Below are positions 6,801 through 16,200 of a DNA stretch of 64,000 nt, piece after piece. Source of the DNA: Macrostomum lignano (lineage: Eukaryota); assembly GCA_002269645.1 (NCBI GenBank), contig NIVC01003554.1, forward strand, positions 1-64,000, given 5' to 3'. The position numbers were made by a program, and so were the translations under genes. How positions within the stretch are numbered: the stretch's first letter is position 1; each line of letters opens with the position of its first letter. Under the pieces are notes generated by a model. That model made no database searches. It was given only the letters and a program-made list of their open reading frames with translations, and had not been told where the DNA came from.

Positions 6801-9800
6801 CAGACCCAAGCCACCCCCAAGCGGCAATAAGCTTTGCGCGTGCCGTAGGTTGCGTCACTCGCAATAAGTGAAAAAATCATTTCGCTTAGTCGGGTGGAAC
6901 TTTTGACTGTTGCTGAGTATTAATAATCATTTACGGTGAGAAATTTTTAAAACAAAACTGAAGATATTTTTCGTTAAAACTCACGCAGCGCCTCGTTGAC
7001 AAGAACAATTTCGCTGGCTTTAAGGTGGTGTCGAAAAACATCACTTCCATGGAGTTTGGCCCGATATCCACCGCTATTGCGTATAACTTGAGCAGGGCAA
7101 GGGAGATCTACATCTACGACATGCTGTCTATATGGAACGTCTATTTAAAGAAGATTGTCTGCAAGCAGGTAAGACAGAACTAAGATTGCATACTCATTTT
7201 TTAATAGAACTTTTTTGATATTCTGGAATTAAAACAGCGATTAATTTCTCTTTGTTCCATTCCTAACCAAAAGCTTGCGTTAAACTTCACAAATTGAGTA
7301 CGTGTGTAATTTTTTGGGGACGACAGATCGATAAAACAATATGGAGATTCATTTTCTATTTTCTCGTAACTATGCGGTATATGAACTTTCAGACCCTTGC
7401 ACCAAAGTATGGCCAGCCTCCTTGCTTGACGAGGAGAAAGTCAGGGCGGTGTACACTATGTCAATAGGCTGTGTCTCAACTGTCACCTTGTTCTATGACA
7501 AAACAATTTGACTTACGAACCACAAGTACCATACTCTGTAGTTCTTCCAGTGTCACTCCTGTCAGTCATTCATACAATCAAACATTGTCACTCTCCCTCC
7601 CCCCCATTTTTTCAGCCAAACGATGTAAACGAAAGTTATTCGGGTATGACAGGAGATTTTCGACTCTATCCGAATGGCAGCGTGGTTCGAACTGAGTGGC
7701 GGATGCACTTCTATGGTGGCCTGGGATCCGAGCGGCAGAGGGTAACCATTCCGTATTAAGGAGTAAATTTTAATATATGGAAATTTTGACGCTAAAAACC
7801 AGAGTCGTCTAGCTTTGCGTGGTTATAGAAAAAGCACTTGAATTACAATTTTTAACCGTATAAAATTTTAGATTGGCAACTGGAGCAGTTTGGGCTCCTT
7901 CCATTTCAGCAGACAGCCGAATCGAGTTTTGGACGAGGCCACTGTGATCAACGAACTAAATAAAAACACTTTTAGAGTGGTTACAATTTTGGTAAGATGC
8001 ATAGCGTGATACTGAAACTCTTTTTTTTACTTAAACTGGCAAATAGTATACCAGGTAGCTTTCTTGAATCCAAAATATCCCTTTGCAGAAGCCGCCATTC
8101 GTAAAGTACAAGAAGGGATTCGAAAATCGAAATGATGTTCCCCTGTACGACGCACTTGATGGTTTTGCTATTGACATCTGCAAAGAAATACTGAAAAATA
8201 TGTCTGTAAGTATGGGAAAACCAGATGTGGGGCCGTAGCCTAGAGTAGAGTGGTCTTTCGCGGCGCTCTGATTTTCCAGCGGCCGAGGCTCGGTTTGAAT
8301 CTCGGCTTGGCTCTGCTCGTGCAATTTAAGCCCTTGAAGACCCACCCCAAGGCACAGTGAAGTGTAAATGCCTAACGATATATAATGTTAGGGCCGCTGT
8401 ACACTCCTGTGTGAGTGTGTGCCTTTGCGTATGACTGCGTACGTATCCGCACGCTTGTGTGCCTGCTCACTGGAGTCGGCGGAATGGGCAGTAATGCCTC
8501 TCGCCGGTTGTGTGACAAAGTGGGTAATAAAGCTCTACGACCGTAAGTAGTGCTACCTCCATTTTGAAGGACATGTATTACCCTTTTACGAGCAGGCTCA
8601 AGGACTTACGATATTTTAGTGTATACTAAATAAATCCCTTAGCCAGAAAGCCATATGCCATATCCCATGTTTACTGATTTAACAGTTATAAAACGGCTCA
8701 ACCGATTAACTCATCGAAATTTGTTTTTTTCTAAAGACCAATTGGCACAGCTAGTTGATTAGAACTTCAGTTTTAGTATATTTTTATTAAGAATTCCGAA
8801 ACATGGTGTATAAATACGACGTAAGTAAGTTTGAGCGAAATAGAATCCAAAATCAGTTGACTTATGAAAGTGAGTATTTGGGGTAATAATTATCTAAGTA
8901 TTTTATTGTGCTATTAAATGACAATTCGCCTTTGCAACATCCAGATACACGACGTGAGCTTCTTCCTGCAGCCGGATAATCAGTACGGATCTCGGGACAG
9001 CCGGGGCAACTGGAACGGCATTGTGCAGACGCTGATGCAGGGCAAGGCCAATTTCGCATGCGCCAGCCTCTCGGACACTACGGACAGGCGTCAAGTGCTG
9101 AAATTCACGCAGCCCTATTTAAACTTTCAATTGTCGATTCTGTACAAGAGACGCATAGAAAATCCGCTAGTTTTTATGTTCCAATTTATGCGACCGTTTC
9201 ATCTGTACACCTGGCTAGCGGTGATCGGGTCGGTTGTTGGCCTGTCAATCGTTCTGACAGTTCTGCACAAGCTCAGCAGGAATGCGGCAAACTTCGGAAT
9301 TTATGAGACTATTTTCTTTAGCTTCGCTTCGTTGATTCAGGTAATTTGATTTAAGAAGATCAACATACTTTTGATGTAGTTTGTTTAGCTACACCTCTTT
9401 GTCCTTGATCAAAGTCAACGCCTAGTTAAAAGTCGTGTTAGAGACACGTGCATTAGACACTTAGACTGCATAACTCGTTTGTATTGGCTAAAAACTTGAG
9501 AGCACATGTACATACACTTTAAATAAGTACTGGGTCCTCCTTAATAAAAGTTTCTAGTGATTTCCTTGAGTTACGAGCTAGACTGAGCGAGATAACTACG
9601 TAATACGGTATATTGCAGAGGCAACATACCTGTATATCAATATGATATTTTATCACCAGGGCATCACGGGAACTCCACCGGATCGACCGTCGGGGCAGCT
9701 GGTCATCGCCATCTACTGGCTATTCGCTTTCGTCATCTTGGTGGCCTACGTCACTAACTATGCCGCTACCAGGACTCTCAACCGTCTGCAGTCGGAGATC

Positions 9801-13247: not shown

Positions 13248-16200
13248 TCAAACACGCGACTCCCGGCTCAGCAGCTCCGTAACGGCGCTTCTTCGTTTCA
13301 CCGGCACTGACTCCTCTTTGTTTTTAGCCCGCCTTTTACTGATAGACTGCCATGACCGTTCGAAAGTTGCCGAAATCAATGTCAGAAAGCAGCCAATCAC
13401 GTTGATGACTAGCAGACCCAGTGTGTTCTGCAGGGTCAGAGCTCCCGTATGTGGTTTCAAGCTGTCTGGCTCAGTAGGGATGATGCCAACAAGAGCGTGA
13501 TTGGCGCAATTTGGTTTCAGCCGCTCTGGGGTGATGAAATACCTAGATAATGGAGTACAGTTGTTAGGGTATAATAATAATAGCTATTGGAATTTATGAT
13601 TGGTTATATTGGTAATAATATTGACAATAATAATAATATCAGTAACAATTGATTACACCTGCCATAATAGACAAATATGTAACCCCCCCCCGATAGTTCA
13701 ACTGCGAAGCTATTGCAAGACGTATCTGAAGGCTGCGTACAGCTGTTAAGTCCAAGGACTGGGGGAGGGGATGTTGCCGCACCCATTCATAAGAATTAAT
13801 TCGTAAATATTTAAATATAAATAATGGTAGCCATTTTACAGCTGGGTGAACTGAAGCAATGCAGAGTTAATTGTCTTGCCCAAGAACACAAATTGTTACG
13901 AGTGAATTGAGAATCGAACTTCCGACCGTTCAGGCGTGAGTCCGACGCTCTAACCACTAGGCTACAAGCCGGCTTAGCCAGGGCATTACAGGTAAAACAA
14001 ATTAGTGAAAATAAATCACGGGAAAATCGGACTTACCTTTCATACAACTCTTGGGGTCTCCCGCTGCTCAACAGTTTCTGCAACTCCAAATCGATCCAAT
14101 GCCTCAAATCAGAGTGCCTCGGCACGCCAAATGTTACAGCCGTGTTCTCAAACTGCCCAGTGACAACGGAATCGCAGATAGTTTGCTGCAAATAGTAATT
14201 AGTTGTCGTTTCGAATATCGCGGCAAATGTCCCAGTATTGACTGCGGCTTCCGCTGCGCTGACATTTGCGAATAATCCATATTCGAAACGCCGCATCGAA
14301 GCGTAAACCTGTCGCATGTCGTAAAATGTGGAATCTTTGAAGAACGCGGATAAGGACGAATTGGCCAGAGTTCCGTAGGTGTAGGTGCTCTGGTCTAGCA
14401 GGCTGACTACTGTCGTGATTTCAGACTGGAGTCGGGCCAGCACTCGCATGGCTGCGTAGTTGCCAACGTAGGCTACGAGCAGGACCAGGACGAATAGCCA
14501 GTAGGCGCTCACAACAATCCGACCGCTGGGCCGGTTCGGAGGATGGCCGACAATGCCCTGCGAGGGGAATGATCAAATAACATTTTCTTTTGCCACTGAA
14601 GACAACTCACAGACAACTAAAGTAGAAATTGTCTAACTGACTGACTGACTGACTGACTGACTGACTGACTGACTGACTGACTGACTGACTGACTGACTGA
14701 CTGACTGACTGACTGACTGACTGACTGACTGACTGACTGACTGACTGACTGACTGACTGACTGACTGACTGACTGACTGACTGACTGACTGACTGACTGA
14801 CTGACTGACTGACTGACTGACTGACTGACTGACTGACTGACTGACTGACTGACTGACTGACTGACTGACTGACTGACTGACTGACTGACTGACTGACTGA
14901 CTGACTGACTGACTGACTGACTGACTAACTAGCAAACAAACAAACTAACAAACAAACAAACAAACAAACTAACTAACTAACAAACAAACAAACAAACAAA
15001 CAAACAAACAAACAAACAAACAAACTAACTAAATGACTAACGAACAAACAAACAAACTGACTAACTAAAAAACTAACAAACAAACAAACTGACTAACTAA
15101 AAAACTAACAAACAAACAATCTAACTAACTAACAAACAAACAAACAAACAAACAAACAAACAAACAAACAAACTAACTAACTAAATGACTAACGAACAAA
15201 CAAACAAACTGACTAACTAAAAAACTAACAAACAAACAAACTAACTAACTAACAAACAAACAAACAAACAAACAAACAAACAAACAAACAAACTAACTAA
15301 CTAAATGACTAACGAACAAACAAACAAACTGACTAACTAAAAAACTAACAAACAAACAAACTGACTAACTAAAAAACTAACAAACAAACAATCTAACACC
15401 TGTCGCCAATTGATTTGTGACCGTGCGTTAAAAGTCCACCCAAACCTATCTCCTTAACCTTAATCATAAGTCTAACAGCAACTAAATCGCTGACAGGACT
15501 TTCCACATTTTTTGCTTTTTTTACTATGAATAAGTGCGCACACCGGGGGGTAATTTTTATATTTCCCCATACTTTCATTGATTTGATCTGTTTATTAAAA
15601 CTAAAAAAGTAAAAAATTCTACTGACGCAACGGTACCAATTTTTAAGCCGCTGTTTGAATTGACGTCTCTGATGTCATTTTGCTAGAATTTCTATTTTTT
15701 TCTCGAGTTACTTTAAAACCTACTTAAGTAAGGTCTTTAAAGTTCAAACTTTATCAGAGATTTCCTTTTCAAATCTATCACTGGGAGCACCGTAAAAATT
15801 CCCAACTACACTCAAAACAGGATACAACGATCACTTTCTATCCACTCACATGGCACTCTAAGCAGGTCCTATTCTCGTCAGGGATCTTTGGTCTCGCAGT
15901 CCACTTTATGGTTTGCGTTTGAATCCTGGATTGGAAGTTTTACTACTAATGCTTCTAAGAGCCCGAACAGCCAACCATTTTGAATTAAAACATGATTTAC
16001 CTGCACCAGAGAGGCAAACAAAAAGAACAGACTGTACTGCAGATCAAACAGCTGATGATTGGCGCTGATTCTGTGCAAAATTGCCAGCACGAAGGCCACA
16101 ATTAGCATTGAGCCCAGCAAATAAAACCAAGTAGACGTGTTCAGTGGAAACATGAACTGAAACATCTCTTTAGTAGCGTCTGGAGGAATCTTTTTGTATA

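Follow-up and report, generated by a model that had tools for sequence, protein, structure and literature searches.

Two convergent ionotropic glutamate receptor paralogues of the flatworm Macrostomum lignano with a shared, altered M3 gate motif

The DNA analysed here, called the window throughout, is the first part of Macrostomum lignano contig NIVC01003554.1 (64,000 nucleotides; record coordinates equal window coordinates), and its character is eukaryotic, with GT-AG introns and plentiful microsatellites. It holds two ionotropic glutamate receptor (iGluR) genes, A on the plus strand and B on the minus strand, which lie tail to tail with their stop codons (11276 and 13248) 1,971 bp apart, and both of which carry an unusual version of the M3 gate motif. 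The two gene models were assembled by hand from splice sites and then verified computationally (Table 1). All introns of both genes are GT-AG and neither reading frame contains an internal stop, which bears out the tail-to-tail pair of intact iGluR genes reported in a preliminary description of this DNA. The span given there, 9660-14557, corresponds to the first bases of the two M3/S2 exons but covers only the 3' parts of the genes. The last seven exons have identical phases in A and B and equal or nearly equal lengths (126, 120, 117, and 396 nt for four of them); the M3/S2 exon of B is one codon shorter than its counterpart, and B has no equivalent of A's intron 3. Direct translation of 9660-10183 (+) contains YWLFAFVILVAYVTNYAATRTLNRLQSEI, the start of the exon giving GITGTPPDRPSGQLVIAIYWLFAFVILVAYVTNYAATRTLNRLQSEI, and the M3 motif of B is seen both in the minus-strand open reading frame at 14033-14512 and in the exon at 14557-14037. 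Searches of the window with the exons of both genes (tblastn and tblastx) returned no further iGluR genes or fragments.

Table 1. Coordinates of genes A and B and of their principal parts in the window
Feature	Coordinates	Strand	Remarks
Gene A, iGluR paralogue	3863..11276	+	837 aa, 11 exons; stop 11274-11276; splice-site model
Gene A exons 1-5	3863-3944, 4084-4257, 4361-4533, 5963-6262, 6989-7168	+	
Gene A exons 6-11	7616-7741, 7872-7991, 8089-8205, 8945-9340, 9660-10183, 10955-11276	+	
A exons 1-7	3863..7991	+	signal peptide and divergent amino-terminal domain, ~365 aa
A exon 9	8945..9340	+	rest of S1 (Y450, T480>S, R485), pre-M1, M1, M2 pore helix; ends on Q/R-site Gln codon 9338-9340
A exon 10	9660..10183	+	end of pore loop, M3, M3-S2 linker, S2 lobe including 653/655 (T, Y) and 705 (D)
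M3 motif of A, AYVTNYAATR	9744..9773	+	aa 585-594; aligned to GluA2 S615-L624
A last exon	10955..11276	+	extended S2-M4 linker, M4 including clade-specific Asn782, C-terminal tail
Spacer between the two stop codons	11277..13247		1,971 bp; convergent 3' ends lie here
Gene B, iGluR paralogue	13248..26163	-	847 aa, 10 exons; stop 13250-13248; splice-site model
Gene B exons 1-5	26163-26061, 24731-24552, 24289-23781, 18204-18028, 17532-17407	-	
Gene B exons 6-10	17304-17185, 17104-16988, 16396-16001, 14557-14037, 13542-13248	-	
B exon 8	16001..16396	-	equivalent S1/M1/M2 exon; ends on Q/R-site Gln codon 16003-16001
B exon 9	14037..14557	-	counterpart of A exon 10; 653/655 S, L; 705 E
M3 motif of B (first nine letters AYVGNYAAM)	14444..14473	-	aa 605-614
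B last exon	13248..13542	-	S2-M4 linker, M4, tail

Neither gene is new to the databases: the spliced A protein is 100% identical to PAA50833.1 (BOX15_Mlig005297g3) and the spliced B protein to PAA50834.1 (BOX15_Mlig022707g3), and GenBank and UniProt annotate both as "hypothetical protein" or "PBPe domain-containing protein". A cluster look-up shows that the cluster of A comprises copies g1-g4 of BOX15_Mlig005297 and that of B copies g1-g4 of BOX15_Mlig022707. The four near-identical copies of each gene are explained by the DV1 line of M. lignano, which carries duplicated chromosomes, 180 Mb of the assembly lying in blocks at least 95% identical (PMC5730564). Assembly Mlig_3_7 is annotated with transcripts assembled from RNA-seq data under guidance of the genome and then filtered (PMC5730564), and the GenBank models therefore provide transcript support for both genes and for the M3 exon junctions that we inferred, as models rather than as reads that we viewed. 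The tail-to-tail layout recurs in homeologous copies g1 and g4, the open reading frames are unbroken in every copy examined, all splice sites are canonical, and the M3 motif is identical in 12 of 12 listed cluster members.

Constraint was measured between these homeologous copies as the ratio of nonsynonymous to synonymous substitution (dN/dS); the deep paralogues, at 34-44% amino acid identity, are saturated at synonymous sites. The pooled ratio is ∼0.23 for A and ∼0.58 for B, with one-sided binomial p values of 0.004 and 0.027 from small counts and pairs that are not independent. Between copies of A, exons differ by 0.28% and introns by 1.6%, so that the exons are about six times less diverged. 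These data bear directly on the possibility that A and B are decaying duplicates or annotation artefacts whose odd motif reflects relaxed constraint. The DV1 assembly is indeed highly redundant, and individual dN/dS values between copies of B run from 0.45 to 0.65. Such decay nevertheless seems very improbable in view of the intact reading frames, canonical splice sites, and transcript-derived models, the motif that is identical in all listed members and kept across deep paralogues, and the low divergence of A's exons; a pseudogene or misannotation was rejected on the same evidence.

No element of iGluRs is better conserved than SYTANLAAF, which is central to every gating model. The M3 segments of A and B were placed exactly on SYTANLAAFL by ungapped alignment to GluK1 (PDB 7lvt/7ysv), and since no gap interrupts the alignment with GluK1 and GRIK1 anywhere from the pore loop through the M3-S2 linker, both proteins can be numbered after GluA2. 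Each matches SYTANLAAF at four of nine positions (AYVTNYAAT in A, AYVGNYAAM in B), with Y616, N619, A621, and A622 kept. Translation and alignment agree with the original count of six changed positions out of ten in each gene, and with the observation that S>A, T>V, L>Y, and L>R are common to the two while A>T/G and F>T/M differ.

The rarity of these changes was assessed in the 150 nearest representative clusters from an exhaustive profile search of 1.84 billion representative proteins. Approximately 135 of the 150 keep SYTANLAAFLT or deviate from it by one or two residues; clusters with a canonical M3 span nemerteans, annelids, molluscs, echinoderms, hemichordates, amphioxus, arthropods, nematodes, and vertebrates, including human GRIK1. 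The pattern xY[VI]xNYA[AV]xR is confined, among these 150, to six clusters, all from M. lignano. Besides AYVTNYAATR in the cluster of A, the variants are AYVTNYAAKR (P0001), IYVSNYAVKR (P0004/P0185), TYIANYAAFR (P0005), and SYVANYAVFR (P0006/P0165). Four further sequences are related, namely a seventh M. lignano cluster (P0013, NYAARLGAQL), the Taenia crassiceps protein KAL5110580.1 (AFCANYASYR), a UniParc protein of unknown origin (P0020, UPI000602B78B; AYVANYGAYL), and a metagenome fragment (P0186, ENA ERZ27256860 k141_1040913, 529 bp, 32% GC; AYVANYAAVR). The last is an uninterrupted M1-M3 fragment, 63% identical to P0020, and its contig would place these receptors in at least one further AT-rich animal.

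Tyr620 and Arg624 (GluA2 numbering) are found in 0 of 128 iGluR clusters outside the group, where Leu occupies these positions in 96% and 98% of cases, and their joint presence in A and B is therefore not a matter of chance. Convergent gain of identical substitutions by A and B was considered and rejected: all six M. lignano clusters have Y620 and R624, which points to common descent within one clade rather than to two independent events. Paralogues with no more than 30-45% identity retain the derived M3 residues, in the six M. lignano clusters and partly in the Taenia protein and the metagenomic fragment. The identical substitutions in two diverged paralogues, from which the preliminary description argued for selection, are thus inherited characters of the clade; that they remained fixed while the rest of the proteins diverged to this extent is the real evidence for selection on these residues.

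The clade itself came to light only in the exhaustive search of representatives, since a word-indexed homologue search has very low recall for this family (1, 3, and 1 matches). The six M. lignano clusters head the profile search, two full-length proteins scoring 875 and 785 bits, and the sixth match has a score of 338 bits against 220 bits for the seventh. In a neighbour-joining tree of 137 sequences and 452 columns of the ligand-binding and transmembrane domains, with taxa drawn from the top 150 of one search, the nine available sequences (the six motif clusters, P0013, KAL5110580.1, and P0020) form one clade with 97.5% bootstrap support. Inside this clade, the partners of A are P0185/P0004 (79%) and that of B is P0013 (60%); A and B fall into different subgroups and are therefore not each other's closest relatives, with an identity of 34% over the whole length and of 41% over the C-terminal half. 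The clade lies outside the cluster containing human GRIK1 (100%) and outside the AMPA-containing cluster (76%), and is thus not nested among AMPA or kainate receptors. The reference set of this tree contained no NMDA, epsilon, lambda, phi, or named ionotropic receptor (IR) sequences. Judged by similarity, the nearest relatives are non-NMDA (AMPA/kainate/delta-type) iGluRs. The clade is small and evolves fast, and every member whose origin is known is a flatworm protein. No description of the clade or its motif was found in the literature on the locus tags and on flatworm iGluR phylogenies, and one paper on schistosome "IRs" does not deal with either. The uncharacterised receptor clade of the preliminary description is thus borne out, in that we found no description of it; the genes themselves were already annotated.

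The family also occurs elsewhere in the assembly. On contig NIVC01000941.1 (6612-6989, 10001-14152, 23367-24151), Mlig034115 stands in a head-to-tail array of A-like genes, flanked by a last-exon match on the upstream side and by the start of another gene on the downstream side, each in the same orientation; this array indicates that the family expands by tandem duplication. Duplication of the A/B pair as a unit of obligate partners was rejected as an idea, given that the Mlig034115 locus has A-like copies without a B-like partner and the neighbours of Mlig015771 are unrelated. The adjacency of A and B looks like the product of local duplication, probably in inverted orientation, and heteromerisation of the two is neither supported nor excluded.

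The domain architecture is that of an iGluR. A, B, P0005, and the Taenia protein all have Pfam matches to Lig_chan-Glu_bd, Lig_chan, and SBP_bac_3. The bilobed S1/S2 ligand-binding domain is recognised by PF10613 (E = 9e-24 in A, 1.3e-23 in B), with PF00497 spanning S1 and S2, and the GluK1 alignment extends over its full length; the M1-M2-M3-M4 channel is recognised by PF00060 (E = 1.7e-14 in A, 5.7e-19 in B). Two cysteines in lobe D1 (A residues 416 and 463, in exons 8 and 9, and the same columns in B) are present in all six full-length M. lignano members, while the same columns contain Leu and Val and 0% Cys in the 128 outgroup clusters; they may form a clade-specific disulfide. Cysteines also stand at the places of the conserved ligand-binding-domain disulfide pair of kainate and AMPA receptors, as read by eye from the alignment.

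The amino-terminal domain is harder to recognise. ANF_receptor was not found by Pfam in A, B, P0005, or the Taenia protein, and the isolated N-terminal 364 residues gave no Pfam match even at E ≤ 10. A profile of five N-terminal sequences searched against the PDB gave a weak match to the GluN2B amino-terminal domain (E = 0.63) at co-linear positions. An AlphaFold2 model built from the clade alignment has a mean pLDDT of 69.6, a pTM of 0.71, and an alternating strand-helix pattern, and its best Foldseek matches are GluK2 (3h6g), GluK3 (3olz), GluD1 (5kc9), and full-length GluK2/GluA2 (E ∼1e-12, probability 1.00, TM 0.44-0.49, identity 10-12%). On this model, the region appears to be an extremely divergent amino-terminal domain, recognisable as a type I periplasmic-binding-protein fold at the fold level only. 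The "intact" domain of the preliminary description is thus upheld as a fold, but one that Pfam does not detect and that is seen in a model of medium confidence.

The ligand-binding residues point to an amino acid, though probably not to glutamate. Arg485 together with an acidic residue at 705 denotes an amino acid ligand, while Gly653 with Thr655 denotes glutamate and Ser653 with a nonpolar 655 denotes glycine (PMC6307864). Both proteins keep Tyr450 and Arg485, have Ser (A) or Thr (B) at 480, and have Asp (A) or Glu (B, window copy) at 705, from which the ligand is probably an α-amino acid. Positions 653/655 are Thr/Tyr in A and Ser/Leu in B rather than Gly/Thr, and the ligand of each is therefore predicted to be, probably, an amino acid other than glutamate. 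B would match the glycine-type rule; A is left unclassified by it, and its bulky Tyr655 may fill the distal pocket. Elsewhere in the clade, the more canonical P0005 and P0165, with Thr at both positions, would resemble glutamate-type receptors; Ser occupies 705 in P0185 and P0004, and P0020 is without Arg485. Position 692 of B (∼14212-14210, -), the GluA2 E705 site that binds the ligand α-amino group, is Glu in copy g3 and Asp in copy g4; g4 differs from g3, the copy in the window, by 28 amino acids in all.

These pockets invite comparison with the IRs, which like the A/B clade are protostome, lineage-specific, tandemly expanding, and divergent, with variable ligand pockets. A and B could, as functional analogues of arthropod IRs, be lineage-specific chemosensory receptors for environmental amino acids. 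The clade is fast-evolving, multicopy, and lineage-restricted, with head-to-tail tandem copies at at least one other locus; the distal pocket residues 653-655 differ between paralogues; and constraint on B is relatively relaxed. Tuning IRs, however, lack an amino-terminal domain and lose at least one of R485, T480, and D/E705, whereas A and B have an ATD-fold N-terminal domain of ∼365 residues and keep the whole triad (with Ser480 in A). We regard a chemosensory role as possible but doubtful; it is a claim about role and would be compatible with the channel function that we argue for below.

The pore region aligns readily with known channels, the best PDB matches of A and B being GluK1, GluK2, and GluA2 (E ∼1e-42, ungapped through M2-M3). 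The narrow constriction of GluA2 is a hydrophobic seal made up of the T617, A621, T625, and M629 side chains (PMC9068512). The corresponding residues are V, A, T, and L in A and V, A, V, and L in B; both proteins also retain Ala622, which is the Lurcher position, together with Tyr616, Asn619, and Arg628. The nonconservative M3 changes are L620Y and L624R; S615A and A618T/G are minor. L620Y and L624R would lie one helical turn apart on a face ∼100° from the pore-lining face, and F623T/M on the back face. Other clade-specific columns cluster in M4, where a Leu that is 94% conserved elsewhere is replaced by Asn alongside Thr, Leu, and Cys changes. All seven sequences that carry Arg624 have Asn or Ser at this M4 position, whereas the 51 outgroup sequences with M4 aligned all pair Leu624 with Leu, Met, or Ile in M4. 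Relative to canonical receptors, the S2-M4 linker is extended by ∼16-20 residues, and it contains a conserved IPxEP element. The pore loop retains the Q/R-site Gln, after which G-(I/V)-x-G stands in place of Q-G-C-D. The gate can thus be called rewritten as regards the M3 motif, as the preliminary description had it, but not as regards the constriction, whose residues are unchanged or conservatively replaced and which is accompanied by Ala622 and the Q/R-site Gln. With the constriction kept and the radical changes on another helical face, the leaky, non-conducting, or non-ionotropic receptors suggested earlier are not the favoured reading.

We favour, from the sequences, functional channels with altered gating and non-glutamate ligands. 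Specifically, A and B, two transcribed, intact, convergent iGluR paralogues of a lineage-specific clade, probably work as amino-acid-gated channels with a remodelled gating collar, a view that we hold with moderate confidence. Both would still act as tetrameric ligand-gated cation channels, in which the pore-lining M3 face continues to form a hydrophobic seal (V at 617, A at 621, T or V at 625, L at 629). The changed parts would be the neighbouring M3 face (L620Y, L624R), the top of M4 (Leu to Asn), and the lengthened S2-M4 linker; together they would represent a co-evolved rebuilding of the collar through which the ligand-binding domain acts on the gate. Such a collar would alter the energetics of gating without abolishing the gate, and the altered filter and missing acidic pore residue suggest that permeation may differ as well.

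Two other accounts start from the same residues. A and B might be non-conducting or signalling subunits in the manner of GluD. They would then be mainly scaffolds, ligand-binding or trans-synaptic, or else obligate modulatory subunits, and the altered M3 would hold the pore closed. None of the 128 outgroup clusters has Arg624 or Tyr620, the pore loop has lost its +4 acidic residue, residues 653/655 resemble those of glycine/D-serine-type receptors such as GluD and GluN1, and T617V and, in B, T625V raise the hydrophobicity of the seal. A dispensable pore, however, predicts drift in M2 and M3, yet Q586-G, the pore-facing residues, and the derived Tyr and Arg are fixed across paralogues 30-45% identical; GluD receptors, moreover, keep the canonical SYTANLAAF, so that an altered motif is no signature of that mode. 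We judge this account unlikely. Less probable again are constitutively leaky channels, in which the M3 changes would destabilise the closed gate much as the Lurcher A>T change does, giving a tonic cation conductance modulated by ligand. The changes do fall in the helix-crossing region, where single substitutions can open the channel constitutively, and clade members P0004/P0185 and P0165 have Val at Lurcher position 622. A and B, by contrast, keep Ala621, Ala622, and a fully hydrophobic constriction, and a tonic leak would usually be deleterious, yet the family has expanded.

Several observations weigh against working channels with a remodelled collar. The dN/dS range noted above for B amounts to weak recent constraint, on small counts. 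The +4 acidic pore residue (D590) is replaced by Gly, and the filter reads QG(I/V) instead of QQG. Conductance is a prediction from sequence, and the face assigned to 620 and 624 follows from helical periodicity rather than from coordinates. The co-variation of R624 with the M4 Asn stems from one or two evolutionary events and is suggestive only; clade member P0013 is an exception to it, with the M4 Asn alongside Leu624. As to the placement of the clade, the tree is distance-based, with long branches and no NMDA, epsilon, or lambda references, and the best support for any sister group is 19.5%.

Among characterised receptors, GluK1, GluK2, and GluA2 (non-NMDA, AKDF) share with A and B an ATD-fold domain, an S1S2 ligand-binding domain, and the M1-M2-M3-M4 arrangement, and kainate and AMPA receptors are the closest matches both by sequence and by amino-terminal fold. 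Retained in A and B are the Q/R-site Gln, Tyr450, Arg485, the acidic 705, Ala621/Ala622, and Arg628. They differ from kainate and AMPA receptors in the four-of-nine match to SYTANLAAF, L620Y and L624R, the M4 Leu>Asn change, the longer S2-M4 linker, the QG(I/V) filter without the +4 acidic residue, the non-glutamate-type 653/655, an amino-terminal domain that Pfam does not detect, and the lack of nesting in the neighbour-joining tree. Changes in the same upper-M3 stretch that controls gating are known from GluD2 Lurcher and GluA2 A622T/T625G (PDB 4u5b, 4u5e). Unlike these mutants, A and B retain the Lurcher alanine and the constriction; their changes lie at 615, 617 (conservative), 618, 620, 623, and 624 and, in contrast to engineered ones, are fixed across the whole clade together with changes in M4 and the linker.

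Divergent M3 motifs are also known from IRs and plant glutamate receptor-like proteins, besides Lambda and some Phi receptors. Within the reference iGluR phylogeny, poor conservation of SYTANLAAF was reported only for Lambda and some Phi receptors, and its functional consequence was left open (Ramos-Vicente et al. 2018, PMC6307864). Lambda is reported there as restricted to sponges, and Phi as restricted to non-vertebrate deuterostomes and lost in protostomes (PMC6307864); their likeness to A and B in the weakly conserved motif is drawn from description, not from sequence comparison. That survey sampled molluscs and annelids and no flatworms, and removed sequences with fewer than four SYTANLAAF matches (PMC6307864); A and B have exactly four and stand right at this threshold. 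A 2026 functional survey of iGluRs included no flatworm receptor. What appears to be new, then, is the clade and its motif, undescribed in the literature searched; the genes as database entries and divergent M3 motifs elsewhere were already known.

The clade fills a taxonomic gap, with flatworms unsampled in the reference phylogeny and a motif filter there that would tend to exclude such sequences. A natural clade with Tyr and Arg fixed on one M3 face also amounts to an evolutionary experiment on how M3, M4, and the linker couple binding to opening. A bolder proposal, which we consider tentative and rather unlikely, is that these receptors constitute an unnamed class of animal iGluRs, so far only from flatworms among known species, whose collar would be rebuilt around a buried polar network of Tyr620, Arg624, and the M4 Asn. 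Such a class would have a different mode of gating (for example, ligand-independent, pH- or lipid-sensitive, or obligately heteromeric) and glycine-type or other non-glutamate agonists. The group has a cestode member and no counterpart among the sampled vertebrate iGluRs; because its members of known origin are all flatworm proteins, one from a tapeworm, the class could, if real, be a parasite-selective drug target.

The introns of both genes are rich in repeats. Most of B's intron 3 is a 5.5-kb minisatellite (18277-23753) with a 19-bp unit, a 115-bp higher-order period, and ∼48 copies, which yields spurious minus-strand open reading frames of up to 1,862 aa. Within B's intron 1, a GC-rich 20-bp tandem repeat (AGGGGCGCCCACCAAGAGAC, ∼57 copies, 24773-25928) causes a local GC peak of 58% and long repeat reading frames on both strands. 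Shorter arrays in B comprise (CAGA)106 in intron 4 (17594-18021), a 22/44-bp repeat in intron 7 (16461-16917), and (ACTG)74 followed by CAAA/CTAA-type repeats in intron 8 (14636-15398). An element in B's last intron (13860-13990, -) resembles a tRNA-derived short interspersed element by eye, and ARAGORN and Rfam report nothing there. In gene A, the last intron contains (GATA)139 (10288-10845), and intron 3 contains an inverted repeat with two ∼160-nt arms (4782-4943 and 5208-5370), 88-92% complementary, that looks like a hairpin or a miniature inverted-repeat transposable element. Upstream of gene A, an open reading frame at 1202-1627 (+) has a CCG...C motif and matches the C-terminal half of the Pfam Tetraspanin model at E = 4e-6, which does not reach the gathering score; the frame probably represents one exon of a tetraspanin gene.

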